Source of the DNA: Schizochytrium sp. TIO01
Lineage: Eukaryota; Protista; Bigyra: Labyrinthulomycetes
Reading direction: 5' to 3'
NCBI GenBank assembly: GCA_004764695.1
Contig: SMSO01000033.1
Span: forward strand, 2,232,001-2,296,000
DNA length: 64,000 nucleotides
Below are positions 12,601 to 52,837 of the stretch, piece after piece. The translations under genes were made by a program, and so were the position numbers. Position 1 is the first letter of the stretch. Each line of letters begins with the position of its first letter. The notes under the pieces were generated by a model that was not told the origin of the DNA, made no database searches, and was given only the letters and a program-made list of their open reading frames with translations.

Positions 12601-13070
12601 TCGCTTCTAACCGTGAGGCCGGCACTTCCCTCAACAAGTGGCTTGACATGTGTGTATCCAGCATTCAGAACGAGGGCATCGAGTCCATGGTTGCTGAGTA
12701 TGGTGATGGTACTAGCTCGTCCACCGCCAACGCATACTGTGCCAGCTCTGTCTCTGCTTACGGTAAGCAAGCTGATGCTGACCCCTGCATGCCTGGTATG
12801 ACTGTCGAGTACTACGACACTGACAGCAGTGCCTGGACTGAGGCCTTCTTCATTCCTTACAACCTCCCCCCCTGCGATGGCAAGCTCGATATCAGTGCCA
12901 AGGGCAACATGAAGCTCTTCACCAGCCAGCTCCGCTTCAAGCAGTGCTTGCTGGACACCACCGACTGCCCTGTTGACATGCATGAGGACCTTTACTGCTC
13001 GGCTGCCCAGGGCTTCACCGTCTCCTACATGTACTCTTACAACACGGACATCTGCCCGACCAGCGCCTAA
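9666..13070 (+). CDS. Secreted Cys-rich protein A (1134 aa) with two tandem ~550-aa units, each containing a VWD-like domain
   Basis: Long intronless ATG ORF with strong C-ending codon bias. Signal-peptide-like N-terminus (KMWRTAAVIVALVGASSQIASG). Motifs CKCIGDPDCTAFDG (aa ~127) and CAAWGDPFISAFDG (aa ~678) match the VWD N-terminal signature C-x-x-x-GDPH-x-x-TFDG. No C-terminal TM/GPI-like segment. A paralog lies at 24760. Confidence 0.9.
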   Translation: MAMTNMIKMWRTAAVIVALVGASSQIASGQSSCEAGLSQTLVQNNARCDYQGVPTLPSTLDTCCGLSSSSDVTDSSDGVCRDIHTDKAFCADDDCSDLGEGDELILYLTMNQTTSDETCCRTCKCIGDPDCTAFDGSHASWVLCDGRKIKNCKMGKKVCLSQVDHLGNQCQWLKGTDSWSNFLESGSPCQPNFELSGYPTMQMYKRGDFELNLTLGERGIIREIVVTSGAGDLYTMTADDCFEYDPRTHTTANTKKAWTTSKSNIPSTWSVSTPNDVEITWRIADSTAGVVIDATCTHATNASSNRFDIDSLYLVGEETDDESGYCSTGVIDRGLASVKLSGDDDYKFQQKCLAVNLPELLTTCKAVVGLECTPHSLNTYIKYWCDNASLDDTDVDGDSDLCYTNLATKGSTADRAELWVKYLCQLNHVNDVDSCMSLVSQFGWVEFLNKYSNGLSDTTATGSSATTTCVSNVSSYSVLEGDDATCALGIFVEYELTTDNWVQAFFIPQNQPPCNDELVINGAEQANLFLYPIRFRQCSLAESCLQDTGCAPTAGFDVQLTFSSTVCPLRGEGECFDTQCQLDETTSSSPQEICGTVPTSPLDVGSCESCCTTDVLLGSDLESERCRTLLTQVPFCDTETESSLCSSLATSAGNGTLTIEVELNTTDMNCCKNCAAWGDPFISAFDGTKTKWINCDGRNANCAVKEDVCITQKDQAGNTCVYNADIAALIQTGSDIGAYGSPCQSNVTLSGDATLEMYKIDGLTISITNGERSVITMLTITNADDTFHLDSAKCFDSDPYDAWSADDGTDIEGGSSLTTSFEDTDSSNQKRWTIVDVNTGVFLKVVCIRMTSKSGFVGGYRMNIENLIDTEPQREDGEGFCVSGVIDTGLATINENGNTCQENTESLLLFCQTVGIGTCQYSTLAKVVDAWCDEAANIYTSSSDSSKACYKYINPTTSRISKNKASILNNWQELYCTAIASNREAGTSLNKWLDMCVSSIQNEGIESMVAEYGDGTSSSTANAYCASSVSAYGKQADADPCMPGMTVEYYDTDSSAWTEAFFIPYNLPPCDGKLDISAKGNMKLFTSQLRFKQCLLDTTDCPVDMHEDLYCSAAQGFTVSYMYSYNTDICPTSA

Positions 13071-24759: not shown

Positions 24760-27700
24760 ATGACCATGAGCGCTGACAACATGAAGCGCCGGCTACAGGT
24801 TGCCGCCGCTGTCCTGGCGACTGCCGTGGCCCTCTTTGCCAACGAGGCACAGTCTGCCGCTTCCTCGTGTGGCTCAGGCGACACTCAGATTCTGTATCAA
24901 AGCAACACCAAGTGCACCACAAGCAGCAGCGGTGTCTCAAACCTGGCAACCCCTGAGGTTACCGTAGACACATGCTGTGGCATTGAGTCCACATCAAGCT
25001 GGGCAGGACTCCTTGATGATGACAGCTCTTCTGATGACTCCATTTGCAGATACGTCGAGACCTCTAGTGCATACTGTGAGGATGGCACCGACTGCGAACT
25101 CAACTCCACCGATACAATGACCATCAGTCTTAACATGTACACCACAGCTGCCAACGAGACCTGCTGCCGCTCCTGCAAGTGCGTCGGTGATCCCGACTGC
25201 GTCTCTTTCGATGGCACCCCGGCATCCTGGGTTCTCTGCGATGGCCGCAGGAAATCTAACTGCAAACAAGGTCGCAAGCCCTGCCGTCGCCAGCGTGACC
25301 ACTTGGGCAACCGCTGCAAGTGGATCAAGAAGGATCCGCTCTATGAGGGCTGGGATGAAGATGGAAGCCCTTGCCAGGTTGACTGGGAAAAGTCCGGTCA
25401 CCCAACAATGACAATGTACCAGCGTGGCCTCTTCGCAAGCAACCTGACCCTCGGCGAGCGTGGTGTCATTGTTAACCTCACCATCTCTACAGGTGACACC
25501 GGCGCCGAGTACGTCCTCAACGCAGCTAGGTGCTTCGAGTACGACCCGCGATCCAACCCTGACACATATGCAGAGGCATGGTACTCCCCGACTGGAGATG
25601 CCATCCCCTCCACATGGAGCGTCAGCATCCCGAACGAAGTCGAGATCAAGTGGCGTGTCCTCGATAACCAGACCAACACCATCGTTGAAGTTCTTTGCAC
25701 AAACCCTCCCGACACCAACCGAACACGCCTCGATGTCAAGAAGCTGTACAGCCTCGACGATGAGACTGATGACGACGAGTACGGCTTCTGCGTTACCAAC
25801 ACGATTGACCGCGGCCTTGCCACCACCAAGTACAACTCCTACAGCGATGGTGGCCAAGCTGACTACGAATTCCAGCAAAAGTGCCTCGTCAAGACTCTCC
25901 CCACGATCCTCGCTACCTGCAAGATCATTATGGGAGCACAGTGCAACCCGTACAGCCTTGACTCTTACGTAACCGAATGGTGTGAGAACGCTGACCTGAC
26001 CTACACTGACCTTCAAGGTGACGTTGATGAGTGCATTGACATGCTTGTGACCTCCGGAACTGACAGCGTCCGCGGTGCTCGCTGGACACGCTACTTGTGC
26101 CAGCTCAACCGCGTCGACGATGTTGATGAGTGCGTAGCTCTCGTGTCCCAGTTCGGTTGGGCTTCCTTCCTTGAGACCAACTCCAACGGTCTCAACGACG
26201 ACAGCACCTCCAGCAGCTGCGCTTCCAACGTGACTCTCTACTCTAAACTTGAGGGCGATGATGCCACCTGCGCTCTCGGAATCTTTGTCGACTACCAGCT
26301 CACCAACGGCACCTGGGTCCAAGCCTTCTTCATCCCTTCTGATTTGCCTCCTTGCGATGCCGAGCTTTCCGTCGATGGCTCTCAGTACCCCGAACTATTC
26401 ATGTACCCAATTCGCTTCCGCCAATGCACGCTCTCTGCGTCTTGCCTCGAGGAGACAGGATGTGCTCCGACTGTCGGCTTTGACGTTTCTCTCAACTTCG
26501 ACTCATCTGTCTGCCCTCTTGGTGAGCGAGACACCTGCTTTAGCTCCGAGTGCTCCATGGACTCTACCACTTCCACGTCTCCCCAGACTGTTTGTGAGAC
26601 CCAGCCCTCAGATCTCTTGAGTCTCGGTAGCTGTGAGTCCTGCTGTACGTCTGATAATATCCTTGATTCCGGGGCGCTCTCCGGCAGCCTCGAATCCGAC
26701 GACAGCACTGCTCTCTGCCGTCAAGTTCTCACCACGGCGCCCTTCTGTGATGCTTCTGACTCCTCTATGACCTCAATTTGTGACTCCCTCATCACCTCAA
26801 ACGGACAAGGTGTCTTGACTGTGAACCTTACACTCAACACCACGGAAATGTCTTGCTGCAAGAACTGCGCTGCCTGGGGTGATCCGCTTGTGTCCAGTTT
26901 CGATGGAGAGATTTCCAAGTGGATCAACTGTGATGGCCGCAACTCCAACTGTGCTATCAAGGAGGATGTTTGTGAGTCTCAGCTTGACCACGCCGGTAAC
27001 GCATGTGTTTACAACTCAGCCATTGCGGATCTCATCAAGGTTGGCTCTGACATTGGTGCTTACGGATCCCCGTGTCAGTCGAATGTAACTCTCTCTGGAG
27101 AGGCAATTCTTACAATGTATGAGGGCGACGGTTTCCGCGTCAACATTACAAACGGTGAGCGCAGTGTTATTACGCACATGTCTCTTGAGACCACCTACGA
27201 TAACTACACTCTTGACGCTGCCTTGTGCTTTAACGATGATCCTTACGATGCCTGGACCACCGCCAGTGGAAACGAAATCGACTCTGCCTACCTTGGTCTC
27301 GACTTCAGCGCTACCGATAATGATGACCAGTACATTTGGGCTGTGCGCGATCTTGAAAACTCTCTCTTTATGCGTATCCGCTGCATTCGTATGACCTCAA
27401 GCGCTGGCTACACTGGTGGTTACCGCATGAACATTGAATCGCTCATCGATATTGAAACTGACCGCACCGACACTGATGGCTTCTGCGAGTCTGGTGTGAT
27501 TGACACTGGCCTTGCTACCATCAACTCCAACGGCGAGATTTGCCAGGAGAACATTGAAGACATTGTTGACTTCTGCCGCGCTGTAGCTACCCCGTCATGC
27601 ATGCTTTCCGAGATCGCTACTGAGGTTCAGAACTGGTGTGACACTGCAAACGTCTTCCAGACCAGCGAAGATCATGCTCAGGAGTGCTATGACTACATCA

Positions 27701-28233
27701 AGCCTTCCCGCAAGAAGACCACCAAGATTCTTAACGCCTGGGAGGAGATTTACTGTGATGCCGTGGCCTCCCTTCGTGACTCCAGCCAGTCCGTCGATCA
27801 GTGGCGTACTCTTTGTGTCTCTCGTCTTCAGAATGAAGGCTTTGCTAGCGTCGTTGCTGAACTTGGTGATGGCCGCCTTACCTCTTCTTCTCAGAGCCTT
27901 TACTGTGCTAGTTCCGCCAGTGAGTATTCTCTCAAGTCTGAGAGTGACGGCTGCATGCCCGGAATTAGTGTCGAGTACCTGAACTCCACCGGCGACTGGG
28001 TTGAGTCCTTCTTTGTCCCGCAAAGTCTCCCCCCCTGCGGTAACCAGCTCGTCATCGATGCTGTTGACTTTCCCGAGCTCTTCTTGAACCAGATTCGCTT
28101 CAAGCAGTGCGAGTTGGACACCACCGAGTGCCCGGTCGGCACGCACACTGACTCATACTGTGCCACCGCCCAAGGATACACTATTTCGTACATGTACTCC
28201 TACAACGCTGCCATTTGCGGTAACGATAGTTAA
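24760..28233 (+). CDS. Secreted Cys-rich protein B (1157 aa), paralog of 9666..13070, with two VWD-like units
   Basis: Signal peptide (MKRRLQVAAAVLATAVALFANEAQS). Motifs CKCVGDPDCVSFDG (aa ~143) and CAAWGDPLVSSFDG (aa ~707). Long identical blocks with protein A, e.g. GSDIGAYGSPCQSNVTLSG, LEGDDATCALGIFV, GGYRMNIE. Confidence 0.9.
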   Translation: MTMSADNMKRRLQVAAAVLATAVALFANEAQSAASSCGSGDTQILYQSNTKCTTSSSGVSNLATPEVTVDTCCGIESTSSWAGLLDDDSSSDDSICRYVETSSAYCEDGTDCELNSTDTMTISLNMYTTAANETCCRSCKCVGDPDCVSFDGTPASWVLCDGRRKSNCKQGRKPCRRQRDHLGNRCKWIKKDPLYEGWDEDGSPCQVDWEKSGHPTMTMYQRGLFASNLTLGERGVIVNLTISTGDTGAEYVLNAARCFEYDPRSNPDTYAEAWYSPTGDAIPSTWSVSIPNEVEIKWRVLDNQTNTIVEVLCTNPPDTNRTRLDVKKLYSLDDETDDDEYGFCVTNTIDRGLATTKYNSYSDGGQADYEFQQKCLVKTLPTILATCKIIMGAQCNPYSLDSYVTEWCENADLTYTDLQGDVDECIDMLVTSGTDSVRGARWTRYLCQLNRVDDVDECVALVSQFGWASFLETNSNGLNDDSTSSSCASNVTLYSKLEGDDATCALGIFVDYQLTNGTWVQAFFIPSDLPPCDAELSVDGSQYPELFMYPIRFRQCTLSASCLEETGCAPTVGFDVSLNFDSSVCPLGERDTCFSSECSMDSTTSTSPQTVCETQPSDLLSLGSCESCCTSDNILDSGALSGSLESDDSTALCRQVLTTAPFCDASDSSMTSICDSLITSNGQGVLTVNLTLNTTEMSCCKNCAAWGDPLVSSFDGEISKWINCDGRNSNCAIKEDVCESQLDHAGNACVYNSAIADLIKVGSDIGAYGSPCQSNVTLSGEAILTMYEGDGFRVNITNGERSVITHMSLETTYDNYTLDAALCFNDDPYDAWTTASGNEIDSAYLGLDFSATDNDDQYIWAVRDLENSLFMRIRCIRMTSSAGYTGGYRMNIESLIDIETDRTDTDGFCESGVIDTGLATINSNGEICQENIEDIVDFCRAVATPSCMLSEIATEVQNWCDTANVFQTSEDHAQECYDYIKPSRKKTTKILNAWEEIYCDAVASLRDSSQSVDQWRTLCVSRLQNEGFASVVAELGDGRLTSSSQSLYCASSASEYSLKSESDGCMPGISVEYLNSTGDWVESFFVPQSLPPCGNQLVIDAVDFPELFLNQIRFKQCELDTTECPVGTHTDSYCATAQGYTISYMYSYNAAICGNDS

Positions 28234-31716: not shown

Positions 31717-33768
31717 TCAATCATCAACGTGAGGCACATCGACCTCATCGTCCAAGCTTTTTCTTCGTGGGGATTTGCTTCTCTTGGTCTTTCGTGCACC
31801 TTTGCCTTTGGATTTAGGTGAACCCGAGGTAACACCTCCGTCACTGCTTGCCTCATCAGTATTCACTGACCCACTATCTACAGCACTACCAGTACCCGTC
31901 TTTTTCTTTGGACTTGATGCCTTCGATGATGCCGGTGTTTTCTTATTACCGCCACCTGTTGGTGAGTTAGCAGGAGATTTCTTTGCTTTACTAGCATCGC
32001 CACCAGGGGACTTTTTACCAGCCTTCTTAGCTGGTGAGGGACTCTTGGCACCACCTTTGCCACCTTTTTTAGTTGAACGTCCACGACCTTTATCGCCTTT
32101 GTCTCCTTTGCCTCCTTTGCCCCCTTTGCCTCCTTTGCCTCCTTTGCCTCCTTTGCCCTTTTTACCCTTTTCAAGAGCATCAGAAGCTTCAGCGGCGGCA
32201 GCCTCGGCTGCCAAGGCCTCCTCAATCTCTCGTGCCATCTGCATAGCCTCTGCTTCTCTGAATTGGTGTGACTCCTCGTCTGCTTTACGCATTTCTGCTA
32301 ACTCTCTTCCACAGTATGCCTCGTTGAGCCTAGCTAATGTGTCTTGGAGCTCAACTTCAAGCTCTTCAGTCCGTTTTATTGCTACATTTGCAGCTTGGGC
32401 ATTAGCCAACCCACGCATATCAGTCTCAATGAAACACTCTACTGTTGCAGACGAGAATTCTTCTGCACCTCTCTTGTATGCCTCAAACTCTTTACGTAAT
32501 GTGGCAATCTCTGCGTTGTGGTTATCCAGATTCATCTCTGCCTCACGTAGACGTTCAGTGCGCTCGTGAAGAAGCTCTGTGCGGTCCGTAAGAGTGCTTT
32601 CAAGATCCTCAATACGACCAAGGAGTTCACCCTCACGAAGCAGGTGATCCTGTATAAGCTTTCGCATTCGTTTTTGTAGGTTCTCAATATCGTTTTCACG
32701 CTGAGTGATCTCAACTTGAATACGAATACTCTCTAAAAGCCGTTGCTGATACATAATGTCTGCAAGACCCCGAAAGTATGAAGCTGATGTTTCGTATTTT
32801 TTCAGATCACGCATTTCGGCACGCACATTATTTGCTTCAGATACCGCATGTTTCGCACTTTCATTCACAGAATCTCGCTCCCCTAACAAGTCTTGCAACA
32901 TCTCCAGCAGATCATTGCGAAATGTTTCCTCAAGGTCGCGCACAACGTGGATCTGGGCCAAAAAATTTGTCACTGACTGGAAATCTGGACGTACTCTAAC
33001 ACCCTTCTCCAAACGTTTTAGTTCAGTCTCTACATATTCTAACTTATCCAAAAATGTGGTGACTTTCATATCCTTATCTGACGTTGGGTTGTTACGTTTC
33101 CAGACAGAATTCTTCATAAACACTGGCTTTGGAACACCGTCAAAGTTTTTGGACTCAATTACTGCAATGGTGTGCCGCTTCCAATGTTGAAGCACAGCTC
33201 CACGAATATTTTCTCTACACTTCATCAAATTTTTACCAGCAGCCCGAAGGTACTCGATCACGATACCATCCCAGACACTCTGTAGTATTTTACGCGCACA
33301 GGCATCCTCATTTTCAGGCTCCAAAAGACTCAAAATTGCTAGTAAGTTATTTCGACGGCTACTGAGCTGTTTAATCCCAACCTCTAGGCAGAGTGTTCGA
33401 AGCTCTTCCGTGTTGTGAAGCTCTAAGAGCTCTTCAAGACCTCTGCGAATATCCTCCGCGAGCTTCTCGCGGTTTTTGGCATTCTCGTGCTCTATTTCAA
33501 GCTGCTCAGGAGATAACTTTCGGACTGTCTCAGGGACACCCTGTGCAGCCTCTAATTGAGAAGAGAACGACGCCGAGGATTCTACATCTTGCTCTCCTCG
33601 GGACCCCGGTCGAATCCTCTTTCCCGCCTTGCGACTTCGCTGGGTTCTATGAGATGGGGAATGACGCCCATGAGGACTTAACGACGACCGAGATGATGGA
33701 GACCCTGACGAGGACGTATGCGACAGTCGCGGGTGGCCGCCCAGAGCTAATTTCCGCGCATTCAGCAT
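31717..33768 (-). CDS. 683-aa probable nuclear protein: SAP-like motif, long coiled coil, (GKG)n repeat and K/S/P-rich H1-like tail
   Basis: ATG ORF. LELHNTEELRTLCLEVGIKQLSSRRNNLLAIL resembles a SAP helix-loop-helix. E/K/R heptads run through aa ~240-520, and the C-tail has many SP/TP-K motifs. Confidence 0.8.
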   Translation of the reverse strand: MLNARKLALGGHPRLSHTSSSGSPSSRSSLSPHGRHSPSHRTQRSRKAGKRIRPGSRGEQDVESSASFSSQLEAAQGVPETVRKLSPEQLEIEHENAKNREKLAEDIRRGLEELLELHNTEELRTLCLEVGIKQLSSRRNNLLAILSLLEPENEDACARKILQSVWDGIVIEYLRAAGKNLMKCRENIRGAVLQHWKRHTIAVIESKNFDGVPKPVFMKNSVWKRNNPTSDKDMKVTTFLDKLEYVETELKRLEKGVRVRPDFQSVTNFLAQIHVVRDLEETFRNDLLEMLQDLLGERDSVNESAKHAVSEANNVRAEMRDLKKYETSASYFRGLADIMYQQRLLESIRIQVEITQRENDIENLQKRMRKLIQDHLLREGELLGRIEDLESTLTDRTELLHERTERLREAEMNLDNHNAEIATLRKEFEAYKRGAEEFSSATVECFIETDMRGLANAQAANVAIKRTEELEVELQDTLARLNEAYCGRELAEMRKADEESHQFREAEAMQMAREIEEALAAEAAAAEASDALEKGKKGKGGKGGKGGKGGKGGKGDKGDKGRGRSTKKGGKGGAKSPSPAKKAGKKSPGGDASKAKKSPANSPTGGGNKKTPASSKASSPKKKTGTGSAVDSGSVNTDEASSDGGVTSGSPKSKGKGARKTKRSKSPRRKSLDDEVDVPHVDD
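32087..32170 (-). repeat. Coding 9-bp tandem repeat (CCTTTGCCT)n encoding GKGGKGGKGGKGGKGGKGDKGDKG
   Basis: Visible tandem repeat inside the 31717..33768 ORF. Confidence 0.9.
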
Positions 33769-34743: not shown

Positions 34744-37266
34744 TCAGGCTCCAGTTACGTCAGTGTTGGGATCATGGCAGTTTGCAAATGCAGCGTAATA
34801 GAAGAATCGATTCTCCTTTGAAATATTTCTTTGACCAAAGTGAGAGAGCAATCCATCAAATATGAGTGCGTCACCTCGCTTTAGAATAGGCTCCACCATA
34901 TCAATGAAGCTATCCCAGTCAGGAGGAGCAGAGTGGCGGTGAGAACGAGGCCAAACGCGAGTACCTCCAGTATCCTTTGTTTGAGTTGTGAGCGGGATGA
35001 GAATCGTCACATAATGTGTGCGAGGATTTTCATCCTTTCGGCCAGACCAGGAGCTATCCGTGTGTACTCGCTGGTCTACTGACCCAGGTGCAGAAAGCAT
35101 AATATCTTGTGTTCGTAATTTGGCGCCTTTGCATAGGAATTTAATAAAGTCATTCAACCCAGACTCTTTAAGTTGCTTTTCGACGGTGAAACAGGCCTCG
35201 CGGGGCAATGGCATGTCATACCGCCCAGGTTCACGAGTCACTAGAGGTGAAAGAACGGTCTCTCCAGCCAAGCCAAAGTTCTTGATGCAGGCCTTGATAG
35301 TGCGAATAGCCCCCATCCACTGTTGGTTGCCCTTGCGTTGGCGCATGAACATGTGGCGGTTGCGAGCTTCGAGTCCTTCTTCAGGTGGGCCGTTGAGCAT
35401 CAACTCAAGGTCTTTTTCTTGAAGAACTGAAGGGAACACAGTGTAGCCCTCTTCGAGAAACTCCTTCACATTAGAGCAGTCTTTGCGATCCTTGGCTTGG
35501 ATAATTTTAGTTTGCATCCACTTGCTGAGTTTCGGAACAACGGGAGCTGATTTCTTTGAATCAAATGTTTGGGAGTCCTCTGGCGAAGCTTGATCTGTAC
35601 AAGGTGAGGATGGTGTATCTGAGGACTTTGACGGGCTGTCAATAATGTTGCGCTTCGATTCTGAGCTTCTTTTCCTCTTCTTTTCGGATGCTTCGATGTC
35701 TGCTCCACCATTCTGAAAGAACTTGATTACCATCGGAATGGAGCGCAGGCGACGGCCGCTACTCCGCACATACACTGCACGTTGCCGCAATACCACATCG
35801 CCGTTAGGCTTTTTATCAGATTTCGTCTCAAACTCGATTGTCCACTTTTTTATGAGTTCTGGATTTAGATTGTTCTCCTCAAGTGAAGATCGAAGTTTTT
35901 GGAGAGTCTGCTCAACACGCACATGTTCAGGGTGGCGGCTCCGCACTTCAGGTACTGTATCCTTTGGTGAATCGGATTTCCTTTCTTCGTCTGTCTCATC
36001 TTCATCCTCTTCTCCTTCGTCTTCGTCATCGCTGTCTTTTTCGCTTTTGTCCTCATCATCTTCTTCCTCCTCACTTTCAGCTGATTCCTCCTGTGATTCC
36101 TCCTGTAAGCTTTCAAAGTACCTTCTCACAGCTGGAATAGATCGAAAGCGTTTTCCAGACTCAGTGACAAAGACAACACGATGGCGGATAATTTGATTCC
36201 CACTGCTGTCTCGATCTATTTTATTCTCGAAGGTGATTTCCCAGTCTTCGACAGCATCTTCTTCGACTCCAGCTGCTTCGCAAGCCTTCAAGAGTCTCTT
36301 ACGGGCTGTTGCTTTACGCTTTTCTTCTGAATGCCGACTATTCCATTCTGACTCGGGCTTTGCTTTGCATTTTTTGCCAGAACGTTTCTTTGGTCTAGGC
36401 TTTGAGGGCAGTGCATCGTCCTCTACCTCCTCCTCTTCTTCCTTCTCCATTTCTTCTTGCTCGTCCCCACTCGCAGCTTCTTTTTCTTGCTCTGCAGTAT
36501 CCTCCTCTCCCTCGCTCACTGACTCTTCATCGTCACTTTTGGAGTTCGTACTCTCTTCGTCCGAATTATCGTCATCGTCATCGTCATCATTATCATCGTC
36601 TTCATCTTCATCGATGTCGTCTTTGTTGGAGTTGTCTCCAACATTTTCCTTTTCCTCATCCTCCTCTTCGTCCTCAGACAATAGTTCTTCTTTCTTGTTA
36701 CTTTTCAGTGCCTTCGTCTTACGGGCCTTCTTCTTCACATGCTTGTCCTCCTCATCGTCGTCTTCATCTTCATCTTCATTCTCATCTTCGCCTTCGTCAT
36801 CACTCTGCGATTCAACGTCCTCATCGTCGACCTCTTCTTTGACCTTTTTATTCTTCTTCCTCGTTGTCCCAGTGGTATATCCAGATCCATTCTTAGACCT
36901 AGATTTCTTTGAGATGGTCTTCGAGTTTGGCCTTTTCTGGCCCTCGTTCTTGGCGTTCTGCTTGATTTTGTCCTCCATATACGTCCGAACCTCAGTCATG
37001 GACCTTAAGACCTTCTTTCTTTTGTATGTAAACACGAGCCTGCATTTCTGTTCCTGCTTCGAACGACTGCTCTTGCCAACTCTAGAGGATTTTACACGGA
37101 TAGGGATGAGCTTGACAGTAAGATCTTTCACGTCCGTTTCATCACCATTAAGTTCGTCCAATATCAGACATTTGATTTTGGCTTTAGCTGTATTAAGCCG
37201 CTCATTCTTCGGCACACATTTTCGGCCGGTATTTGTCCTCTTGGACCTGGCAGACCTTCGGGCCAT
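34744..37266 (-). CDS. Triple MBD-like-fold protein fused to a C-terminal PhyH-type Fe(II)/2-oxoglutarate dioxygenase (~840 aa)
   Basis: The first ATG is at 37266 (MARRSAR); the track's 37593 start is TTG. Three MBD-like motifs: VFTYKRKKVLRSMTEVRTYM, WEI...VFVTESGKRFRSIPAVRRYF and WTI...VYVRSSGRRLRSIPMVIKFF. Dioxygenase motifs: EEGYTVFPSVL, QRVHTD (HxD), GGTRVWPRSH, RGDALIFDGLLSH (distal His) and ENR (2OG-binding Arg). Confidence 0.85.
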   Translation of the reverse strand: MARRSARSKRTNTGRKCVPKNERLNTAKAKIKCLILDELNGDETDVKDLTVKLIPIRVKSSRVGKSSRSKQEQKCRLVFTYKRKKVLRSMTEVRTYMEDKIKQNAKNEGQKRPNSKTISKKSRSKNGSGYTTGTTRKKNKKVKEEVDDEDVESQSDDEGEDENEDEDEDDDEEDKHVKKKARKTKALKSNKKEELLSEDEEEDEEKENVGDNSNKDDIDEDEDDDNDDDDDDDNSDEESTNSKSDDEESVSEGEEDTAEQEKEAASGDEQEEMEKEEEEEVEDDALPSKPRPKKRSGKKCKAKPESEWNSRHSEEKRKATARKRLLKACEAAGVEEDAVEDWEITFENKIDRDSSGNQIIRHRVVFVTESGKRFRSIPAVRRYFESLQEESQEESAESEEEEDDEDKSEKDSDDEDEGEEDEDETDEERKSDSPKDTVPEVRSRHPEHVRVEQTLQKLRSSLEENNLNPELIKKWTIEFETKSDKKPNGDVVLRQRAVYVRSSGRRLRSIPMVIKFFQNGGADIEASEKKRKRSSESKRNIIDSPSKSSDTPSSPCTDQASPEDSQTFDSKKSAPVVPKLSKWMQTKIIQAKDRKDCSNVKEFLEEGYTVFPSVLQEKDLELMLNGPPEEGLEARNRHMFMRQRKGNQQWMGAIRTIKACIKNFGLAGETVLSPLVTREPGRYDMPLPREACFTVEKQLKESGLNDFIKFLCKGAKLRTQDIMLSAPGSVDQRVHTDSSWSGRKDENPRTHYVTILIPLTTQTKDTGGTRVWPRSHRHSAPPDWDSFIDMVEPILKRGDALIFDGLLSHFGQRNISKENRFFYYAAFANCHDPNTDVTGA

Positions 37267-40083
37267 ACTCGCTGCGACGTTCCTAGGCTCCACACCAAAT
37301 GCAAAGATGCCCAGTCCAGGGCGTGCAATGCAATGACACAGGTCAAGGCCGAGAAGCCAAAGTTGTCCAAACCGGGGAAGAAGACCAAAGAATGGGAAAA
37401 AAAGCAAAGAAACACTGAAGAAAATAAAAAACAAAAAGACGAGAAAGGAAATGAATGGAATCAATTCACCTCGCGAGAATGCGCAGCCAGCCAGCCACGC
37501 CTCTTGGACCGCCGCTTCTCCAAGCAAACCAATGCCAAAAGGGAAATTAACGAAAAGAGCTACGCCTCCGCGACGTGCCCGCGCAGCGAGCAACCGGACC
37601 CACTTCGGCCAACGGAGTCCTCCCCAGTGGTTGCCGCTTTGCAGTTAGTCAATCAAGTCGAAGTTTTGATCACTGGAGGCTCAATAGAACCCCGCTAGTC
37701 CAAACCATAGAACACCACCCAGAGCTTTAGTATAGGCGGTGTGCTGGCAGTTTGCTCTACTATGTACAGAAATACTCCACTGTAATCGACAATACTCTAC
37801 TATCCAAGAGGTCGTTTAACCCATTCAAAGCGGTGGCGTCAAGTGAGTTATAGGCGGAAACCAGACAGAGAAGCGTCCCGGTGGCCTCGAGCTCTCCAGC
37901 GAGCGCGAGTCATTTATAGTGGATGCAGTACATCATCAATGTAAACGCCTGTCCCAAGCTTGAGTTTCGTAGCTCCATTGGAGTGCAGAGCAATTTTCGG
38001 ATACATGCAAACGGCTTCGATTCAATTTGATCTGCTTGCGAACGATTTTCAGACGGGCCGATTCTTGGTGAGGACGCAAGCCATAACACGAACTGAGCCT
38101 GCTTCGAAAATATGGAAATGGCCTGGAATGAAACGAATGGAGAATCGAAGACTTGCGATGGTGGGTGGGTAGGGAGAGAAATACCTGCTCTCGCCTTCTC
38201 TGCTATGTGGGGATTGCAGCGATGTCTTCAAGTTGATTCCCTTTCCGTCGGTGGAGTATTTCCCACGATGCTAATGGTGTTTTGATGCTGGCTGGTGCTG
38301 ACCAAATCGATGATGACCTCAATTTCAGATGAGGAAGCATATGTATGCGGTAATAACGAAGATAGAGCAGGAATGCAATTTAGAGATAGCATAACTAGAT
38401 CTGAAATGCGCTGCTTTAAGAGAACAATACAGCGGCCTGCAAAATCCAGATTTTACATCTCGCGACAGATCTAGTGGATGTGCTTGAAAGTGAAGAGATC
38501 CAGGGCGCTGGTTTTTACCACTCTTGTTGCATGTGCCAACCTCTTGGCGAGTGCAGTTGGAGATTACAATCTCAGCGACTCTCTGACCTTCGCCCTGAAT
38601 ATAAAGAAGACTGTGATTCATGTGCGAAGCAATCAGAAATTAACTTCTGCAAGTTTGCTGCTCACAATGGTGATAAAACAGGTACACATCCCCACGCCGC
38701 GACTCAGAGACCCGTGCTGGAGCAGAATTGCCACTGTAATTGGCGTGGTAGTCCCAGCACTCTACGCCGCGCCACAGTGATCTGCATTCTTCATCTTCAA
38801 TGTCAAGTACAGCAATAATGAGCCAGGACTAAAATTAGAAGAACCAAGAGAAAGGTCAGCATCATGATTGATTTTTACACTTAAAATAAATATTAAAACA
38901 AATTTTTTCTTTTTTCTTTTTTTTCAACAAATCCCAAATGAATTTACTTAAGGTGCCCATCTCACTACTTAAACTCCAATTCACACTCGTAGACCTAAAC
39001 CCATGCCACAAGAATCACAGCAGAGCTATCAGTGGGGCTCAGTCCACCTAGCAGCCTCTTGCTCGCGGTGTTCGCGTATCTATCACTCTACCCTGCTCTC
39101 ATGTTTATTCATGAATATCCACGCTGCCACAGTCTTTGACAAATTCAGAGACAATAACTACCTCGGTAAATATCAGCGACCTTGGGCTAGTATGAACCAA
39201 AAGCAGATGAAATACGAAAATCCTTGCTCTAATTCATATTGCTTTTATTCATCTTCTTCATTTATCCAACTAAAGCTAAAGATGCTGTTATGCCCGTGCT
39301 CAAATGGCCATTATAATTCGTTAAGAATTCTGCAGATTGTACCTTATAACCTTCTGAAGTAGAGAAGTTTTTTTTTTTTCAAGTTATACGGCAAAGCCAA
39401 AGCTTGTTCATGCCAAATTGCTTCGCGCTTTGCAGTGAGTAAGGCAGTAAATGAAGTTATTATATATTTTGTGGCAAAGACGCTATGAGCAGGAAATACA
39501 GAAAATAATCATGTCGATTTCGAGTTTGCACAATAAAATAAATGATGTCCTCTTCGACTCCGAAAACTTCCCAGATGACCCAAAACTTGATATCAGTCTA
39601 AGAAGCCCCTTGGCAATAGCCTCGTTCCAAATGAATTTATTTCATAAGTTTATTCGCAAGGCAGCAGGCGTTTGGGTTTTCTCTACGGATGCAACTAAAC
39701 ATAAATCCACTGCAACGTCTGAGAAGTTTCGTTCTTCTTTTATTAGTTGTTTTCCTTATCTGAGTCATAATGTTCTATGTGTTCTCTTGCACGTTTTAAA
39801 AGGAACAAGAACAGACAGAACAGACTTTGAGAAAAAGAAGAAAAGAACGAATTTAAAAATCAATCCGACAGAAGCGCATCTCTCGCGCCTCGGCGCCTTT
39901 GAAGCGGCTCTCATTCGCTCTTCAGCTGCTAGCCATTCGGCATCGTGTTCACCGGCCCTCCTGCAGGTTCACCCGTCCTCTGGTGGCAAGAAAAGCGTTT
40001 GCTTCTTTCCCTTTTTGGTGTGGCTAAATTGAATAATCAGCTCACTCGCCCACGAGACTCAACCCTCCAGACTCAAGAGCGCC

Positions 40084-41853: not shown

Positions 41854-42879
41854 TCATTTTACTCGAGCAACAATGTTTGTTTGGCTCTCTTCAACTAGCG
41901 GGTGTTCATCCTCTTTTTCTTTTGGCTCGCTAAATGTAAACTCAGACGGTTCAACTTGTTCATGTTGACTGCTAGCAACAACCTTTGGCACAACAACTTC
42001 TTTTTTAGGTAAAAGACTGTATACACACACATCAGATTCACTATCCACACCTGTGTACGCAGCAGCAAAGGCCCGGCCTTCCGAGGTCGGCTGAGAAAAT
42101 GCAATGCTTTGGCGCGGAACTAGAAATCCGTATATACAGTGAGCACGCCCGCAATCTAGCATTCTGCGCGCAATGTTCTTGCGCCGAAAGCTCGGAGAGA
42201 CCCAGATCTGCAAGACGCCCAAAGCAGGTTTCAACGATGCGCTCGATAGGTTAATCCAACTATGTTGTTTTTGTGAGACGCGCTCCAATGTCAAAAGTCC
42301 TGCGATCTTGTTGTCTGCGATGTAAATAAGGTTCCATCGCATAGGGCTATCTACCCAGCCTTCAATGCTATCAGCAAACCCCATCTCGGGGTCAATCACA
42401 CGTTCTTTATACTCATGTACAAACTTCACTAGCGTACTTTTGAGAGCCTGGCCTCCTCGGGGCAGAAGCACCACGCATTCCTTATCATCCTGAAACCTCG
42501 TGCGGATCCACTCCGTGCGAAGTGATTTGGGAGGTAGTCCTGCTTCTGCGAGAGCACCAAGCTCATGGTTAGCTCGCCTGCAAAATGTCTTGTGGGCAGA
42601 CTCATCAGATTCCACGCCTGGAGCATACATCATGCCACATTTGAGGCACGTCTTGCGCTCAAAGTGTTTCTGTCCAAAGTCAAGAAATACCTGTTGACCA
42701 GACTTCTTGCTAGCTTGCCTTTTCACAGAGCTGGCCTCTGGAGAAAGACCGTTTAAGCGAGCTCGTTTGCCAAGCCCTTGAGAAGCAGCCCTACTCGCGG
42801 TTGGGCTTGTCCACGAGTCCCACCGCTGTCGCTTTGCTACCACGCTTTTGCGAGCCCCTTTGAGCGGGAACATTGACAT
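41854..42879 (-). CDS. ECO1: Cohesin acetyltransferase ECO1/CTF7/ESCO family
   Basis: PIP-like QQVFLDFGQK, zinc finger CLKCGMMY...DESAHKTFC, and GNAT motifs GVLQIWVSPSFRRKNIARRMLD and IAFSQPTSEGRAFA. Confidence 0.93.
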   Translation of the reverse strand: MSMFPLKGARKSVVAKRQRWDSWTSPTASRAASQGLGKRARLNGLSPEASSVKRQASKKSGQQVFLDFGQKHFERKTCLKCGMMYAPGVESDESAHKTFCRRANHELGALAEAGLPPKSLRTEWIRTRFQDDKECVVLLPRGGQALKSTLVKFVHEYKERVIDPEMGFADSIEGWVDSPMRWNLIYIADNKIAGLLTLERVSQKQHSWINLSSASLKPALGVLQIWVSPSFRRKNIARRMLDCGRAHCIYGFLVPRQSIAFSQPTSEGRAFAAAYTGVDSESDVCVYSLLPKKEVVVPKVVASSQHEQVEPSEFTFSEPKEKEDEHPLVEESQTNIVARVK

Positions 42880-43618: not shown

Positions 43619-46600
43619 TCAATTCTTCTTCTTCTTCTTAGCACGGTTGCGCGCAGACCTCTTGAGGGCAGAAATACGGTTTGCCCGACGAGACAGCTCA
43701 GGGAATAGAATCGCTGAGTCGAGTGCGGTGACACGTACTGCCAGACTGCTTGCAGTCTTGGTGCGAAGTGCAAATCCTGCATCACCATACAAGTTGTAGT
43801 ACCAGTTTTCTAGTGGAACAGCAGTGTCCAACATGGCGCACTCAAGGTAGCAGGTGGCTTGGCGGAGATCCCGCCAGTTAGCAGCAGATGTAACCAGACG
43901 AATCCAGCCCTTGCGCATGTCGTTCATCCAAATGCTGTTGTCTTCAATCTTGTGAAGATGAATTGCAAGCTCCATGTTTAGCAGAACTACCTTCACGTCA
44001 AGCAGACACTTGTCCTCAAATGAGGAATTTTCTTTCAAAGACAGAGGCGAAGACTCGATTGCAGCTTTCATATGACGGTCACACATAGCCTTGCCAATGA
44101 CAATTGCAGCGAAACCTGCATTTCCAAAGCGCGCTGGTGTGGGCTCAGCATTGCCATCGTCAGAGACTTCACGCAAGTGTGCACCTACTAAAGTATCAGC
44201 CATATCCTTGCACACCTCAAGCTTCTTGGCGCGTTCCTTCTTTGTCTTGGCCCCAGCTAAGTCCTCCAGGGCTTCAAACTTTTTGTCCCATTCCTCGCCA
44301 CGTGTCAGTAACTTGCACCGGGATTGAATTGCACTGAGAAGTGCAGCCTCACGTTTACCCTTGCCATTGAGACTGTCAAGGAATTTGTTCATGAGGCGAC
44401 GCCCAGCAATAACACGCCAGCCGACTTCATCAGGAGAGGCAACTTTGCGTTCTACGGCCTCTTCACCGAGCATTACAAAGAGCTTCGAGTAGTCACCAGC
44501 AAAATACATGTATCGGTTGAAGTACCGGTCGAGCCCAAGGAACCGAGGACGAATCGCAACGGTTTGAAGTTTCCACTCAAGTTCTGCCTTCCAGCGCTTC
44601 GCATCGTCCTTCTGCTTCTTCTTAGACTTCTGCCGTTCAATATCACGCTCCACGCGTTCAATCGCGCGAAGAAGGCTTTTGCTAAGGGACCCTTCATGTT
44701 TTTTCTTGAATTCAGTCAGCTTGCGCCCCATTCGCTTCTGCTCCGCAACACCCTCACCAGCGAGACGATCAAGAACACCGTCATCCTCCTCATCTTCGGC
44801 TTCGTGTTTCGGGGCAGCCTCAATGACGGGAGGGCTTAAGCGCCACTTCTGCCTGGTACGAATGCTTATCCACATCCGACGATCCACCTCCTCGCGAAGC
44901 AATGCGGTATCGCTAGCAAAGTCACAGAACACACGAAGCATCTGCGTCCGCAGATCAAAGTCAATGTCCTCGTATGACTGAGTACCGAGGGCAACGACAA
45001 AGCGGCGTAGCAAAGCCACCTCACTGCCAGTAGTCCATAGCTTCGGAGCACATGCGTCGATAGCAGCATCTGTAGGCTTGCCATCCTCGTCTTCCATTGC
45101 AGACTTACGGTATCGGCGCTGTTCCTCAAGAGATTGACTATCCAAACGCTCTAATTCCCGGCGTTCATCTTCGATTCCGTTGCGATCACTGTCTACGACA
45201 AGCAGTGCAGAATCACGTTCTAGGTCCTGCAGCTCACCAAGAGTCACAAACTCTACATGATCCTCCATGTGCGCAAAGATTACCTCAAATCTCTTTGTCT
45301 TGGAATCGTACGATACAACTGAACCCTCCTTGCATCCTACATCTTCAAAAAACTTCAAGATGATTGAACCAAGGTGCGACTGAGGAGCATCAGCCTCGCT
45401 GAAAGATAACAAAAGGGAAGAATCAGCAGGCGGGGCGCTCATTTTGGGCACACCGCGCGTAGGCACTGTCGTTTGCGCACGAGACGTTGAAGAGCTTCCA
45501 TTCTGAATTTCGTCTTCTTCGTCATCCTGATCATCTACTGCATTAGGCTTGACATTACGGGGTTTGGAATTACCATTCGCCTTGACGGGGGCAGCGCGAC
45601 CCTCATCCTCGTCCTCGTCGTCGTCTTCATCATCGTCATCATCGTCATCCCCGTCATCTTCCGCACCAGTACCTAAGCGCTTGGCTTTCTTATCACGACG
45701 ACGTTCTTTGCGTTTTGCTTTCTTTTCGCGCTTCTTTGCAGCGTACTGATCATATAGTTGTTGAGCAACCTCTACCTCCCGGCTGTTCATGTTCACAGAA
45801 TCGCCATCGTCATCAAACTTGATACGCCATTTTGACTTGGCTTCATTACATGCTACCACAGTACCACGGACAAGAGCATCAGGGTCATCGGAGTTAACAC
45901 GACGCGCCACACGGGTGTCCACGTGTTTTCCCTCATTCTTAAATCCTTGTTTCTGAAGCTGCGTTGGGATGACATAGTCTTCTACTGTGGCACGAACGTG
46001 CTTACGCTTCCGACGTTTTCTTTTCTTTCCGTTCGCGGAATCTGCACCGTCGGCATTTTCGTGGCCGTCTTCCTTCTCCTCTTCTGCGTGTCCCTCTTGG
46101 TCTCCCTCGGCAGTTTCTTCAGCTGCAACAAGCCATGGCGCAGGAGGGAGACCTTTATCATAGGGATAAGGATTCATTGCCCTCATACTGTCTTCCTTAA
46201 GTACCCAGGCACGAAAGAGTGTTCGAGTCTTTGCGGTCAGAGCATGGGCAAGTTTGTAAATATATGATCCCCGAAGATTGTAAAGCTTGCAGTTAATCCA
46301 GATCTGCTCAATATCATCAAGCACCTGGCTACAATCCTCGTAATGGTTTGCTTTTTGCAATAAATCGTCAACAGTGTGCAAAGCCATCGGCTTATCCACA
46401 ATCTTTGAGTAGTCTGGATATTCGTTAGTGTCAACTTCTTCCCAGAACACACTAGCTTGCTCCTCATTGCCGATGTGACGCACTACAGCCTGGCAACGAC
46501 GACGAGCATCGGCTGTTGCGCGGACATTTGCGGCTTCTTCTGAGACGGGATTTGGTCCAAGCTTTAAGATCTTTTTCTGAGGGCCAGGGGTGGCAGCACC

Positions 46601-49600
46601 TCCACCTGCACCACCACTGCTATTTCGACCACCCTTTCGCTTACGTGATGAAGTAGTTGCTGGTGGTGGGGCTGACACCTCTTCTTCGGGGACGACCTCT
46701 TCTTCCGCGGCAGTAGCATCAGCCTTTTCTTCAACGTCAAGATCCATTTCTTGAGCATCCTCTGTTGGACCAAAGGTAAAGTTATCCATGCTTCTCAACG
46801 CCGTAAGGAGTGCCTCTAGAATCATACGCTTGCATGGGCCAGCAGCATTCGATTTGAAAACACCGGAACTAATGCTGCGTTGGAGCACTGCGCGCAGCTT
46901 AACTTGGGTTTCAGGAATTGTTGAATAGATCTCGTTAATATGAGAACGGATACGGGCGCCCCGGTTTGTAGGCATGTCACGAACAGCAACAAGAGACTGA
47001 GCCCATTCAGGAAGAGCAGCAAGCTTTTCACCGTTGAGATTGCTAATCAAAGGAGGCACTAATGCACTTGAACTTTTCAATTTACTCTTGCTTGACTTCG
47101 ACTTGCCAACCTTCGCCTTGGGACGTGCGATCGGTGCAATACGACGGACACCGCCCATTGAACTCGGACCTAGAACAGAACTACCGTCCCCACTGCGTGC
47201 TCCTGCGCCAGGTGCTGCGCTAGCTTTGGCGGCTGCTTGAATGGCACTAGAAATTGCTTCGGACATCTCAGACTTGTTTGGATAGCTAGTTAGCGACTCA
47301 GCAGCTGCACTGCCACTGTAGGGCGCATTTTGCAGCGATACTATACGCTCAATAATAGGTTTCATTGCAAGTTCACGCATTACAACTAATCGTTGCTTAG
47401 CCATCTTACGAGCTTGACGCTTGCTGTGGCCTGTGGGCTCGCCATCCTCATCAACTTCATCATCCTCTTGGTCATCATTTTCGTCATCATCTTCATCCTC
47501 TCGAGCAGCACGACTCATTACACAACTGACTGATACCTGTGTATGATGCAACACTTCCTTGAAATACTGCGTCTCTCGACCCAACTCGTGCTGACGAATC
47601 TGAAGGATGCAATAGTAACGTAATAGTTCTTGCCATGTTGCATCATTCAGTGGCGCATAGCGCCGCGCAGAAATGCTACGATCACGAGCAGCCTCACTCA
47701 TGTTGCTTTCATGAGTACTTTGCGACCCCAAAAATAGCATCTCGGCAAGTCCAACGTGCATTGGAACAAGCAAATGCATGTCGCATTGGCTCAGTGCCTG
47801 ACGAACTTCAGGGAGTAGGATAATTGGGGTGCGGCCAGTGCCTTCTTTAAAGCGGGGGCGTCCATCGCGTTTCGAAGCCATTGCATTCGCTGTAGCCACT
47901 GCTGACACTCCAGAGGCAGTGCTTTTACGGTTCTTTTTGGTTTTCTTTGCAGATTTTTTAGCTGAAGCTGACTTGGAAGACTTGCCAGACTTAGATTGTT
48001 TGGTTCCCATCGACATATTGGAAATAGACCCTCGTCGAGATGTGATCTCGTCATCATCTTCATCCTCATCTTCATCCTCCTCGTCGTCGTCCTCTTCCTC
48101 GTCTTCTTCCTCATCTTCATCCTCCTCATCTTCAATGTCATCCTCATCGATTTCATCCTCATCAACATCGTCATCATCATCATCGTTGATATCGAGATCG
48201 TCCTCATGACCACCCATAGCATAATCCTCATCATCCTCATCATCGTCGTCGTTGGTGGTGTAAAACTCACCATCAACACCAGGACGGACAAGACCTTCTT
48301 CAACCTCAGGAACTTTGCACAGATTGAAAAGTGGAGCATATTTCGAGAAAAAATCCCAAATTTCCATCAGATCACCACAAACGTGTCCAGCCTGGAGCTT
48401 TCGCATAGCTTCAATAGCAAGAGGTTTCGACTGTTCAAGTACCTCGAGGTCATCAGGGAGTTCTTTTTCTGCCTGTGTGTCAAGAACATTTTCAATCGCA
48501 AGACCTGCTTTTTCAAGTTGGTCATAAAATCCAAAAAGCTCCTTCTTCACTTGTTCAGCTCGCGCAGTTTTAAGTCCTCGCTCACGTTCCGCATTTTCTA
48601 GTTTCTCCAGACGTCCACGTGTGGCAGAGAGCTTTCGTTGCTGTTTCTCAAATTGGTCTTCGGCTCGCTTGAGATCAGTGCGAACACTAATCTGCTCCTT
48701 CTTTGGGAGTTCATCTGCGCCTTCGGCAGCCGCCTTGGCACGCTCGAGCTCCTTCTGCAGGATATCCATTGCTTCTTCTTCGAACTTCACCTGTTTTTGA
48801 AGCATAACGATTTCAGCCTCCTTTTCATCCTTGTGATCCTCACGGTTCTTCTTGATTTCTTCGCGAAGGTCCTTGAGTGCGTCAAGGTGGTCTTGACGCT
48901 CCTTAATGCGGGCATCTTTATCTTCCTTTCGTGTGCGAACAACATCGAGTTTTTCTTGACGTTTAATTTCGACACGCATCAAACGAGCATGGCGGTCTTC
49001 AATGCGCATGTGACGACGAGCGGCTGCTTCGACCCGCCGATCAACAGCGTCTTGGTGTTTCTCCATTCGTTTCAAGGCCTTTTTAATACGGCTACCGACC
49101 ATTTTAAGGCGTTTGTCGAGTTTCTTGTCTTCCTTGTCACGGTCACCACGTTGCAGTCGAAAGTGATAGTTCTGCGCAGTGTCCATAAGTGGAAGAGCCT
49201 CAAAGGTGTCAACAACACGTTTATCCTCAATGCCAAATAAGTATGTTCCGAGCTGCTCATTGAGGAGAGGGGTCAAGTCGACTTGGAACCATTGGATCTG
49301 GTGTGGTTGGGGTAGCATGTGAAGGTTAGGAGCTCCAGCTAGATAATTTTTATCGCCAATGCCAGGAAGATCATTGCTTACCGTATCTTCCAAAGCATCT
49401 AGAGAATCTACGTTGTTGCCCTTTTCATCATCTTGGTTTTTGCGTCGATCGTCAGTATTTTCCTCCGCCTGCTCACTACGAAGTTGTTCGATTTTTGTAA
49501 TATCTTCAGAGGTGAGAGCCTTTTTCAACTTGTCGAGAGTTTCGCCCTGGTACTGACAGCTCTTCCAGCCATCATCAGCCATTTTGGACGGATTTACAAT

Positions 49601-52282: not shown

Positions 52283-52837
52283 CGTGGCTTTGGTGAAGTA
52301 TGCTTTCTCTCTGTCCAACTATCTATTGAATACTTCAAATAATAGGTTTCAAGTCAAATATTTATTTGAACAAAGAGGAGACTCGGCACCAAAGTTCTTC
52401 ACACTTACAATCTTTCTTTTACAGTAAGTGCAAAGTGACGAAATCTGCGTTCGCAAAGTTCTTGTAAGATCTGCAGGTTTAGAACTCCCAAAGTCTGGAA
52501 CTCTTCTAGACCTTACCAAATGACAAGACCCCGAATATAGTTCGAGATTTAGCTAATCTGTCACCAAGGACTGTGGCGAAGCACCAAAAATGCTAAGGTA
52601 GAAGACAAAGAAGCAGGTGCAGAACTCTTCACCGTGAGGCACAGTCCGTGCAGATGCCAAGACCCACTGCGCAGATGGAGTAGTGATCAACCTCAGGAAT
52701 CGATCTCACAAAATTGGGCGCCGGGATATTAATATAGGTGCCCGAAATCTCAGTCAATTAATTAATCAACAAAATCACCAGACCGCCCAAAACTCCAGCC
52801 AGGATCCAGCTCCACAGGTGGCGCCAGGCGTCTCAAA

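Follow-up and report, generated by a model that had tools for sequence, protein, structure and literature searches.

Why should a member of an oxygenase class that, to our knowledge, has so far been tied only to small-molecule chemistry share a polypeptide with domains of a DNA-reader type? This question is raised by one gene in a 64,000-nucleotide stretch of the genome of Schizochytrium sp. TIO01, a marine thraustochytrid of the Aurantiochytrium type (GenBank assembly GCA_004764695.1, contig SMSO01000033.1, positions 2,232,001 to 2,296,000), which is referred to here as the window and whose own numbering is used throughout. On the minus strand of the window, positions 34744..37266 hold a complete, intron-free coding sequence of 840 amino acids (aa) plus a stop codon, with three putative MBD-like modules in the N-terminal half of its product and a PhyH-type Fe(II)/2-oxoglutarate (2OG) dioxygenase at the C terminus. 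On balance, we are somewhat inclined to believe that this protein is a catalytically competent PhyH-class oxygenase, predicted from its sequence to be tethered to chromatin or nucleic acid by its N-terminal half.

The two halves belong to one expressed product. The sequence-only reading of this DNA had allowed that the MBD part and the dioxygenase might be separate transcripts; however, a transcript-derived peptide, P0001 (from transcriptome MMETSP0958, labeled "Auranti...", i.e., Aurantiochytrium; 842 aa), spans both and matches the whole protein at 99% identity, collinear from Met1 to stop and with the same start and stop. The MMETSP0958 peptide is the sole basis for the single-transcript claim. 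It differs from the window protein by six substitutions and by a 2-aa length change in the first acidic tract; the latter falls in an Asp/Glu run at 36750-36800 (minus strand, aa ~144-170), and these differences represent either allelic or strain variation. The minus-strand open reading frame (ORF) called by the program spans 34744..37593, and its first ATG, at 37266, gives the 840-aa product. The upstream part (37267-37593) runs from a TTG codon through a Phe/Leu-rich stretch, LFFIFFSVSLLFFPFF; P0001 begins at the ATG at 37266, and the extension is probably a noncoding, pyrimidine-rich 5' leader. Searches of the genome assembly (64 Mb, 37 contigs) revealed neither a further module nor a further dioxygenase of this PhyH subfamily; the gene is single copy.

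The C-terminal 266 aa (aa 575-840; 34747..35544, minus strand) consist of a family-specific leader helix (L..W[QM]..KI) and the PhyH-type dioxygenase, which ends in an invariant HDPNTDVTG tail. Pfam PhyH (PF05721) scored 36.1 bits against a cutoff of 22 (39.2 bits in a six-frame genome scan), and the nearest solved sequences were the fungal PhyH-type enzymes SptF, TlxJ, AndA, and EasH (E about 1e-5 with the single sequence and 8e-10 with the family profile). Modeling with AlphaFold (AF2) and searching with Foldseek gave a model of aa 575-840 (15 homologs) with a predicted local distance difference test (pLDDT) value of 85.8 and matches to TlxJ, SptF, and AndA at an E value of 5e-13. In VIA structure comparisons, TlxI and AsqJ reached Z 21.7 (root mean square deviation of 2.4-2.7 Å over about 200 aligned residues) and KanJ 20.9, with Z 17-22 across TlxI, AsqJ, KanJ, AndA, and EasH, followed by PHYHD1 (16.9) and PAHX (16.4). 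Among the other 2OG clades, prolyl hydroxylases scored Z 13-15 and ALKBH6 scored 11.6, and TET/JBP was absent among the top 50; likewise, Tet_JBP, 2OG-FeII_Oxy_2, and JmjC had no Pfam match at E <= 1 on the window protein.

The cofactor site can be read directly from the DNA. The proximal iron ligands are H735-T-D737 (HxD; 35056..35064, minus strand), and the segment from the distal ligand, H809, to R820, the Arg for the 2OG C5-carboxylate 11 residues on (34807..34842, minus strand), reads HFGQRNISKENR. H735, D737, H809, and R820 match the HxD/H/R set of SptF and are invariant in the 15-sequence family alignment, where 56 columns, including those of all metal and 2OG ligands, do not vary. Because of the Pfam score, the fold matches, and these invariant residues, the dioxygenase is assigned to the PhyH clade, with a complete predicted cofactor site, and not to TET/JBP, AlkB, or JmjC; an intact HxD...H...R set and membership of this clade were both claimed in the sequence-only reading and are borne out. 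The domain shares with PAHX, PHYHD1, TlxI/J, SptF, AndA, AsqJ, EasH, and KanJ the double-stranded beta-helix fold (Z 16-22), the HxD...H triad, and the Arg 11 residues past the distal His. It is, however, just 13-22% identical to the solved PhyH members, carries its own invariant motifs (RKGNQxW, TTRxxGRYD, RTQDIMLS, GGTRVWP, and the terminal HDPNTDVTG), has no peroxisomal signal, and is fused to DNA-reader-type modules. A PhyH-like fold was also found in one subunit of RESC, the RNA-editing complex of trypanosomes (chain 14 of PDB entry 8fnc; VIA Z 16.6), so that this fold can occur within a nucleic-acid-handling complex.

The N-terminal half contains three repeats, in the places where they had first been noticed. 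Module M1 (aa 19-102; 36961..37212) is a degenerate copy, M2 (aa 312-389; 36100..36333) is the best-preserved domain, and M3 (aa 445-521; 35704..35934) is a further helix-extended MBD-like domain, all on the minus strand. By BLASTP, M2 is 35% identical to M3 (E 5e-19) and 29% identical to M1 (E 8e-5), and a module profile built from other species only matched M1, M2, and M3 with independent E values of 2e-4, 1.9e-13, and 2.9e-5, respectively. Each module runs in the order of an ~18-residue helix, a Gly-rich turn, a Trp-led beta-hairpin, a G-[KR]-[KR]-x-R-S strand, and a helix with V..[YF][FL]; M1 has Leu for the Trp, which sets it apart from canonical MBDs, and a 6-residue insertion in strand 1.

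M2 and M3 very probably belong to the MBD superfamily, and M1 does so with less confidence. Five lines of evidence besides Pfam agree on this assignment, and the superfamily call of the sequence-only reading is thus supported, although Pfam itself stays below threshold: in the HMMER check that had been suggested, PhyH cleared its cutoff, as described above, but MBD (PF01429) did not (18.7 bits against 21). The three-module profile, run with HMMER against 1.84 billion representative proteins at E <= 0.001, returned eight matches, namely, P0001, the Hondaea ortholog P0002, P0017, P0018, P0019, P0020, P0021, and P0022. P0018 (plant MBD7), P0019, and P0021 are true multi-MBD proteins, with Pfam MBD scores of 118, 132, and 90 bits; P0017, P0020, and P0022 carry no MBD and were set aside as repeat-driven artifacts. 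In P0029, which has five MBDs and lay outside the training set, every repeat scored 36-44 bits on the module profile. In the opposite direction, an MBD-only hidden Markov model (HMM) gave M2 23.7 bits, M3 7.4 bits, and M1 3.2 bits, and M3 scored 7.4-11.6 bits across the MBD HMMs, so that profile homology to bona fide MBDs was found both ways. Alignment by hhalign of 12 modules with an MBD alignment from which P0019 had been removed gave 95.8% probability (E 6.7e-9), whereas the controls, one reversed and eight column-shuffled, gave at most 2.3%.

Structural comparisons lean the same way, if less clearly. The AF2 model of M2 (pLDDT 92) shows a helix, hairpin, short strand, and helix in the expected order, and VIA comparisons gave Z 4.7 for AtMBD6, 4.5 for AtMBD5 (49/50 residues, 2.6 Å), and 4.0 for MeCP2 and MBD4. 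The MBD structures were almost wholly covered, at 19-22% identity, although Z did not exceed 4.0-4.7 and the Foldseek E values were no better than 0.1. Foldseek returned nothing on M2 at E <= 0.001, and its listing was dominated by MeCP2, MBD2/3/4, and TAM domains at 24-30% identity; in the ESM Atlas feature search, the MBD cluster ranked first (score 0.91). The top VIA matches of M2, however, were a ribosome hibernation factor and Med17, with Z up to 5.8; these unrelated proteins, at 5-13% identity, were taken to reflect a common alpha/beta arrangement, with the extra helix helping the score. A 2,811-aa ORC5 ORF (G000:C5:1385716-1394148), whose 13-module repeat arm had been a candidate for MBD-like modules, was recognized by neither the module profiles nor the MBD profiles, and its arm is therefore a different domain.

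Compared with MeCP2, MBD2/4, plant MBD5/6/7, and the BAZ2 TAM domain, the modules share the Trp-led strand, the beta-hairpin, the G-K-K/R-x-R-S strand, and the V..Y[LF] helix but add an N-terminal helix and a "GG" turn packed on the domain (pLDDT 96). Of the MBD proteins that the searches yielded (P0018, P0019/P0029, P0021, and a neighboring gene in the window), only P0019/P0029 has this extension. These two environmental ENA proteins (504 and 550 aa) each contain five tandem bona fide MBDs, and each of those MBDs is preceded by a helix and a "CGGAASMVxxW" lead-in like that of the window modules. Since the same helix and lead-in are seen there, the sequences suggest a distinct, helix-extended MBD subtype that also occurs outside the PhyH family.

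It is doubtful whether such modules read 5-methylcytosine (5mC). The residues of MeCP2 that contact methylated CpG (mCpG) are R111, D121, Y123, and R133. In the hhalign register, the equivalent of R133, the "RS" Arg, persists in M1-M3 and in most modules of the family, whereas in M1-M3 D121 is replaced by Arg and Y123 by Val; the R111 region holds Lys/Arg, and the alignment is unreliable there. Only the R133 equivalent is therefore retained among the four positions. The earlier observation that the modules keep the RS Arg and lack the D-x-Y of MeCP2-type readers was correct, and the accompanying caution about a specificity other than mCpG gains weight both from these replacements and from the methyltransferases of this genome. 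Two C5-methyltransferase ORFs were found, both DNMT2-like (of the tRNA C38 methyltransferase type; G000:C13:2183328-2184464 and G000:C6:55828-57102, 442 and 494 aa); a first-look genome scan turned up no candidate resembling DNMT1, DNMT3, or DNMT5. With other residues at the Asp and Tyr positions and only DNMT2-like enzymes found, 5mC reading by the modules is unlikely. TET-like 5mC oxidation is also unlikely, and it was rejected as the leading idea on the grounds that both C5-methyltransferase ORFs are DNMT2-like. Tet_JBP had no match in the genome, a weak negative since the control of that search was silent. The genome does carry at least four AlkB-type dioxygenases and one MT-A70 match. In Aurantiochytrium limacinum, N6-methyladenine (6mA) occurs symmetrically at ApT, where it marks linker DNA in a few peaks that follow the transcription start site (PMC12695648). 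Thus, 6mA is present, yet AlkB-type candidates for its removal already exist in the genome.

The modules are separated by acidic and basic segments, as had been described. On the minus strand, sequence composition delimits a disordered, Asp/Glu-rich tract 1 (aa 144-285; 36412..36837) that is broken by a Lys cluster, KHVKKKARKTKALKSNKK; a basic stretch resembling a nuclear localization signal (NLS) (aa 286-303; 36358..36411), LPSKPRPKKRSGKKCKAKP; acidic tract 2 (aa 388-429; 35980..36105); and a second NLS-like basic cluster (aa 528-539; 35650..35685), EKKRKRSSESKR. The Lys/Arg clusters of the linkers include KKRKR, KKARK, and PRPKKRSGKK. Low-complexity PDB matches to nucleoplasmin and Mpp10 mirror this acidic/basic composition. 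The long acidic tracts are peculiar to the window protein and Aurantiochytrium and are absent from Hondaea and the other members of the family.

Relatives were recovered by domain-level searches, as a query with the full-length protein was swamped by low-complexity words and returned the self-match alone. There are 16, with catalytic domains that are 41-70% identical, and those that could be named (Hondaea fermentalgiana, Mucochytrium quahogii, and Aplanochytrium) are all Labyrinthulomycetes. One to three modules are present in 10 of the 16 distinct members; P0003 has an AT-hook (KKRGRPP) in place of the modules, and the remaining module-less members have Lys-rich tails. The N-terminal regions consist of 17-33% Lys/Arg in the 13 members with a locatable leader motif, and the orthologs keep the part order of the window protein. 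When the ten other PhyH paralogs of the genome were placed in a tree with the family, the latter formed one clade (Shimodaira-Hasegawa-like approximate likelihood ratio test value, 95; stem length, 2.9), within which module-less members were nested among module-bearing ones. The tree speaks for the separateness of the family only and not for any sister group, since the branches of the outside PhyH paralogs are saturated. The nearest prokaryotic sequences, from Novosphingobium and Kordiimonas, align with the core only, at 25-35% identity. Judged by sequence, the family is sharply delimited, and the fusion is conserved across it, with its named members in the Labyrinthulomycetes.

Taking these data together, we postulate that the Lys/Arg clusters would direct nuclear import, that the MBD-like modules would provide multivalent DNA binding, and that the PhyH oxygenase would then hydroxylate a substrate held at chromatin. 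The binding would probably lack mCpG specificity, because the modules no longer have the Asp and Tyr and because the C5-methyltransferases found in the genome are of the DNMT2 type only. Purely from the logic of the domain architecture, chromatin recruitment may serve the hydroxylation of a DNA base or of a histone; we lean slightly towards the side chain of a chromatin protein over a DNA base, since we know of no PhyH-clade enzyme that flips and oxidizes a base. Several observations weigh against this tethered chromatin oxygenase. With regard to the modules, the Pfam MBD match to M2 (E 0.0013) covers aa 354-388 alone; none of the ten relatives searched (P0002-P0010 and P0015) matched Pfam MBD at E <= 1; the matches to MBD folds lie below Z 5, and the unrelated hibernation factor and Med17 reach Z 5.8 on the whole model; and M1 is degenerate, with only the 3.2 bits already given. 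Some MBD/TAM domains bind protein or RNA and not DNA. Six of the 16 family members have no module, and the acidic tracts are not kept in Hondaea. Finally, the nearest solved and the nearest bacterial relatives of the catalytic domain are all small-molecule enzymes, and the Novosphingobium homolog adjoins an N-acyl-homoserine lactone (AHL) synthase gene, a small-molecule context.

Some of these points lend themselves to other explanations. The modules might be protein or RNA adaptors, as in MBD3, MBD5/6, and the BAZ2A TAM domain, within a nucleolar or ribonucleoprotein (RNP) hydroxylase that would act on ribosomal proteins, RNP proteins, or RNA. Several MBD/TAM domains do bind protein or RNA, the canonical DNA-methyl contacts are lost, and nucleolar proteins and histone chaperones typically show long acidic tracts in alternation with Lys clusters, a composition that the nucleoplasmin and Mpp10 matches reflect; the PhyH-fold subunit of RESC (Z 16.6) also fits. 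We nevertheless consider adaptors rather unlikely, because only Aurantiochytrium has the acidic tracts, which Hondaea and the others lack, the "RS" Arg is kept in all window modules and most family modules, the AT-hook of P0003 points to DNA, and no RNA-binding domain was detected by Pfam in the window protein. An ordinary PhyH enzyme of lipid, amino acid, or secondary metabolism, with a regulatory, scaffolding, or incidental N terminus, would accord with the fact that the characterized close structural relatives (TlxI/J, AsqJ, KanJ, AndA, EasH, PHYHD1, and PAHX) all act on small molecules and with the AHL synthase gene beside the nearest bacterial homolog. Such an enzyme would hardly account for a DNA-reader fold multiplied to three copies; moreover, N termini of a nucleic acid type are preserved as a class across the family, the catalytic domain constitutes a long-stem clade of its own, and the protein ends in the invariant HDPNTDVTG with no type 1 peroxisomal targeting signal. 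We regard this metabolic role as quite improbable. An inactive pseudoenzyme or an artifact, such as a decaying gene or the false joining of two genes, has nothing in its favor beyond the low-complexity linkers and the degenerate M1, and it is effectively refuted by the transcript-derived peptide that matches the full ORF, by the metal and 2OG ligands that are all among the 56 columns invariant across 15 homologs, and by the part order that the orthologs preserve.

It can also be envisioned that the modules dock on DNA and that the PhyH domain oxidizes a base, converting 6mA via N6-hydroxymethyladenine (6hmA) to adenine, thymine to 5-hydroxymethyluracil (5hmU), or residual 5mC, in which case the protein would parallel CXXC-TET or SRA-AlkB in function while belonging to a third enzyme clade. 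As already noted, no PhyH-clade enzyme is known to us to act on nucleobases, and the Z of 11.6 for ALKBH6 is far below the 17-22 of the small-molecule PhyH enzymes, with TET/JBP outside the top 50. The loss of the 5mC contacts leaves space for another specificity, and the genome has its MT-A70 match and no Tet_JBP match; the latter negative, however, is a weak one given its silent control, at least four AlkB-type dioxygenases could already demethylate, and 5mC is an unlikely substrate where only DNMT2-like methyltransferases were found. In favor of base oxidation, the logic of a reader joined to a dioxygenase is established for CXXC-TET and has been proposed for SRA-AlkB (PMC4738411), and symmetric 6mA at ApT lies close to transcription start sites in A. 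limacinum (PMC12695648). Taken as a whole, this activity is unlikely, marginally more so than the adaptor role. A more specific version, in which the modules have been repurposed to read, for example, symmetric 6mApT and deliver the oxygenase to demethylate 6mA or hydroxylate thymine, is a long shot; if true, DNA-base oxygenases would have been recruited independently from a fourth family, in addition to TET/JBP and AlkB.

The window as a whole is eukaryotic, with long ORFs that lack introns; a HECT ligase, a Cas1-type acyltransferase, an ESCO acetyltransferase, and a 2,899-aa MBD/RAMA protein are among its products. The ORF for the last of these (43622-52318, minus strand) lies 6 kb from the MBD-PhyH gene and encodes an MBD (25.7 bits), FYRN, RAMA (58 bits), FYRC, two bromodomain stretches, and WSD; apart from its MBD, no Pfam MBD candidate rose above threshold when all six frames of the genome were scanned. 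The RAMA domain has been predicted to read 6mA (PMC4738411). An ESCO1/2-type cohesin acetyltransferase gene (zf-C2H2_3 plus Acetyltransf_13; 41857-42879, minus strand) sits between the two MBD-bearing genes, so that three chromatin genes follow one another on the same strand. Directly downstream of the MBD-PhyH gene, a 683-aa coiled-coil ORF (31717-33768, minus strand) combines a (GKG)n run with a tail rich in Lys, Ser, and Pro and matches no Pfam family, and two ORFs of ~1,140 aa on the plus strand (9666-13070 and 24760-28233) have no Pfam match at E <= 0.01.

In conclusion, the window protein is, on sequence grounds, a credible candidate for a new kind of chromatin-targeted oxygenase. The 2OG oxygenases of chromatin and nucleic acids that are known to us all belong to the TET/JBP, AlkB, or JmjC family, a list that a PhyH enzyme joined to DNA-reader modules would, if our preferred reading is true, extend; such an enzyme would also open a way into the chromatin chemistry of stramenopile protists. 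The helix-extended, Asp-less MBD subtype bears on the roles of the MBD fold where there is probably little genomic 5mC. Aurantiochytrium limacinum can be cultured axenically and transformed. The question raised by this locus is therefore testable in a cultured organism with mapped 6mA (PMC12695648); the genome that holds the locus showed only DNMT2-type C5-methyltransferases and no TET match.

The architecture has precedents in its general plan. A literature search, in which subscription journals were mostly outside coverage, found no description of an MBD-PhyH protein. Fusions of a reader to a dioxygenase have been described as CXXC-TET and, in fungi, as SAD/SRA-AlkB (PMC4738411), and a TAM/MBD-JMJD2/KDM4 fusion has been reported as well (PMC2938197). 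Like CXXC-TET, SRA-AlkB, and TAM/MBD-JMJD2, the window protein would combine a reader of DNA or modified DNA and a 2OG oxygenase on one chain; unlike all three, its catalytic domain comes from the PhyH clade, and PhyH as the catalytic half is a new version of the known reader-plus-dioxygenase theme.

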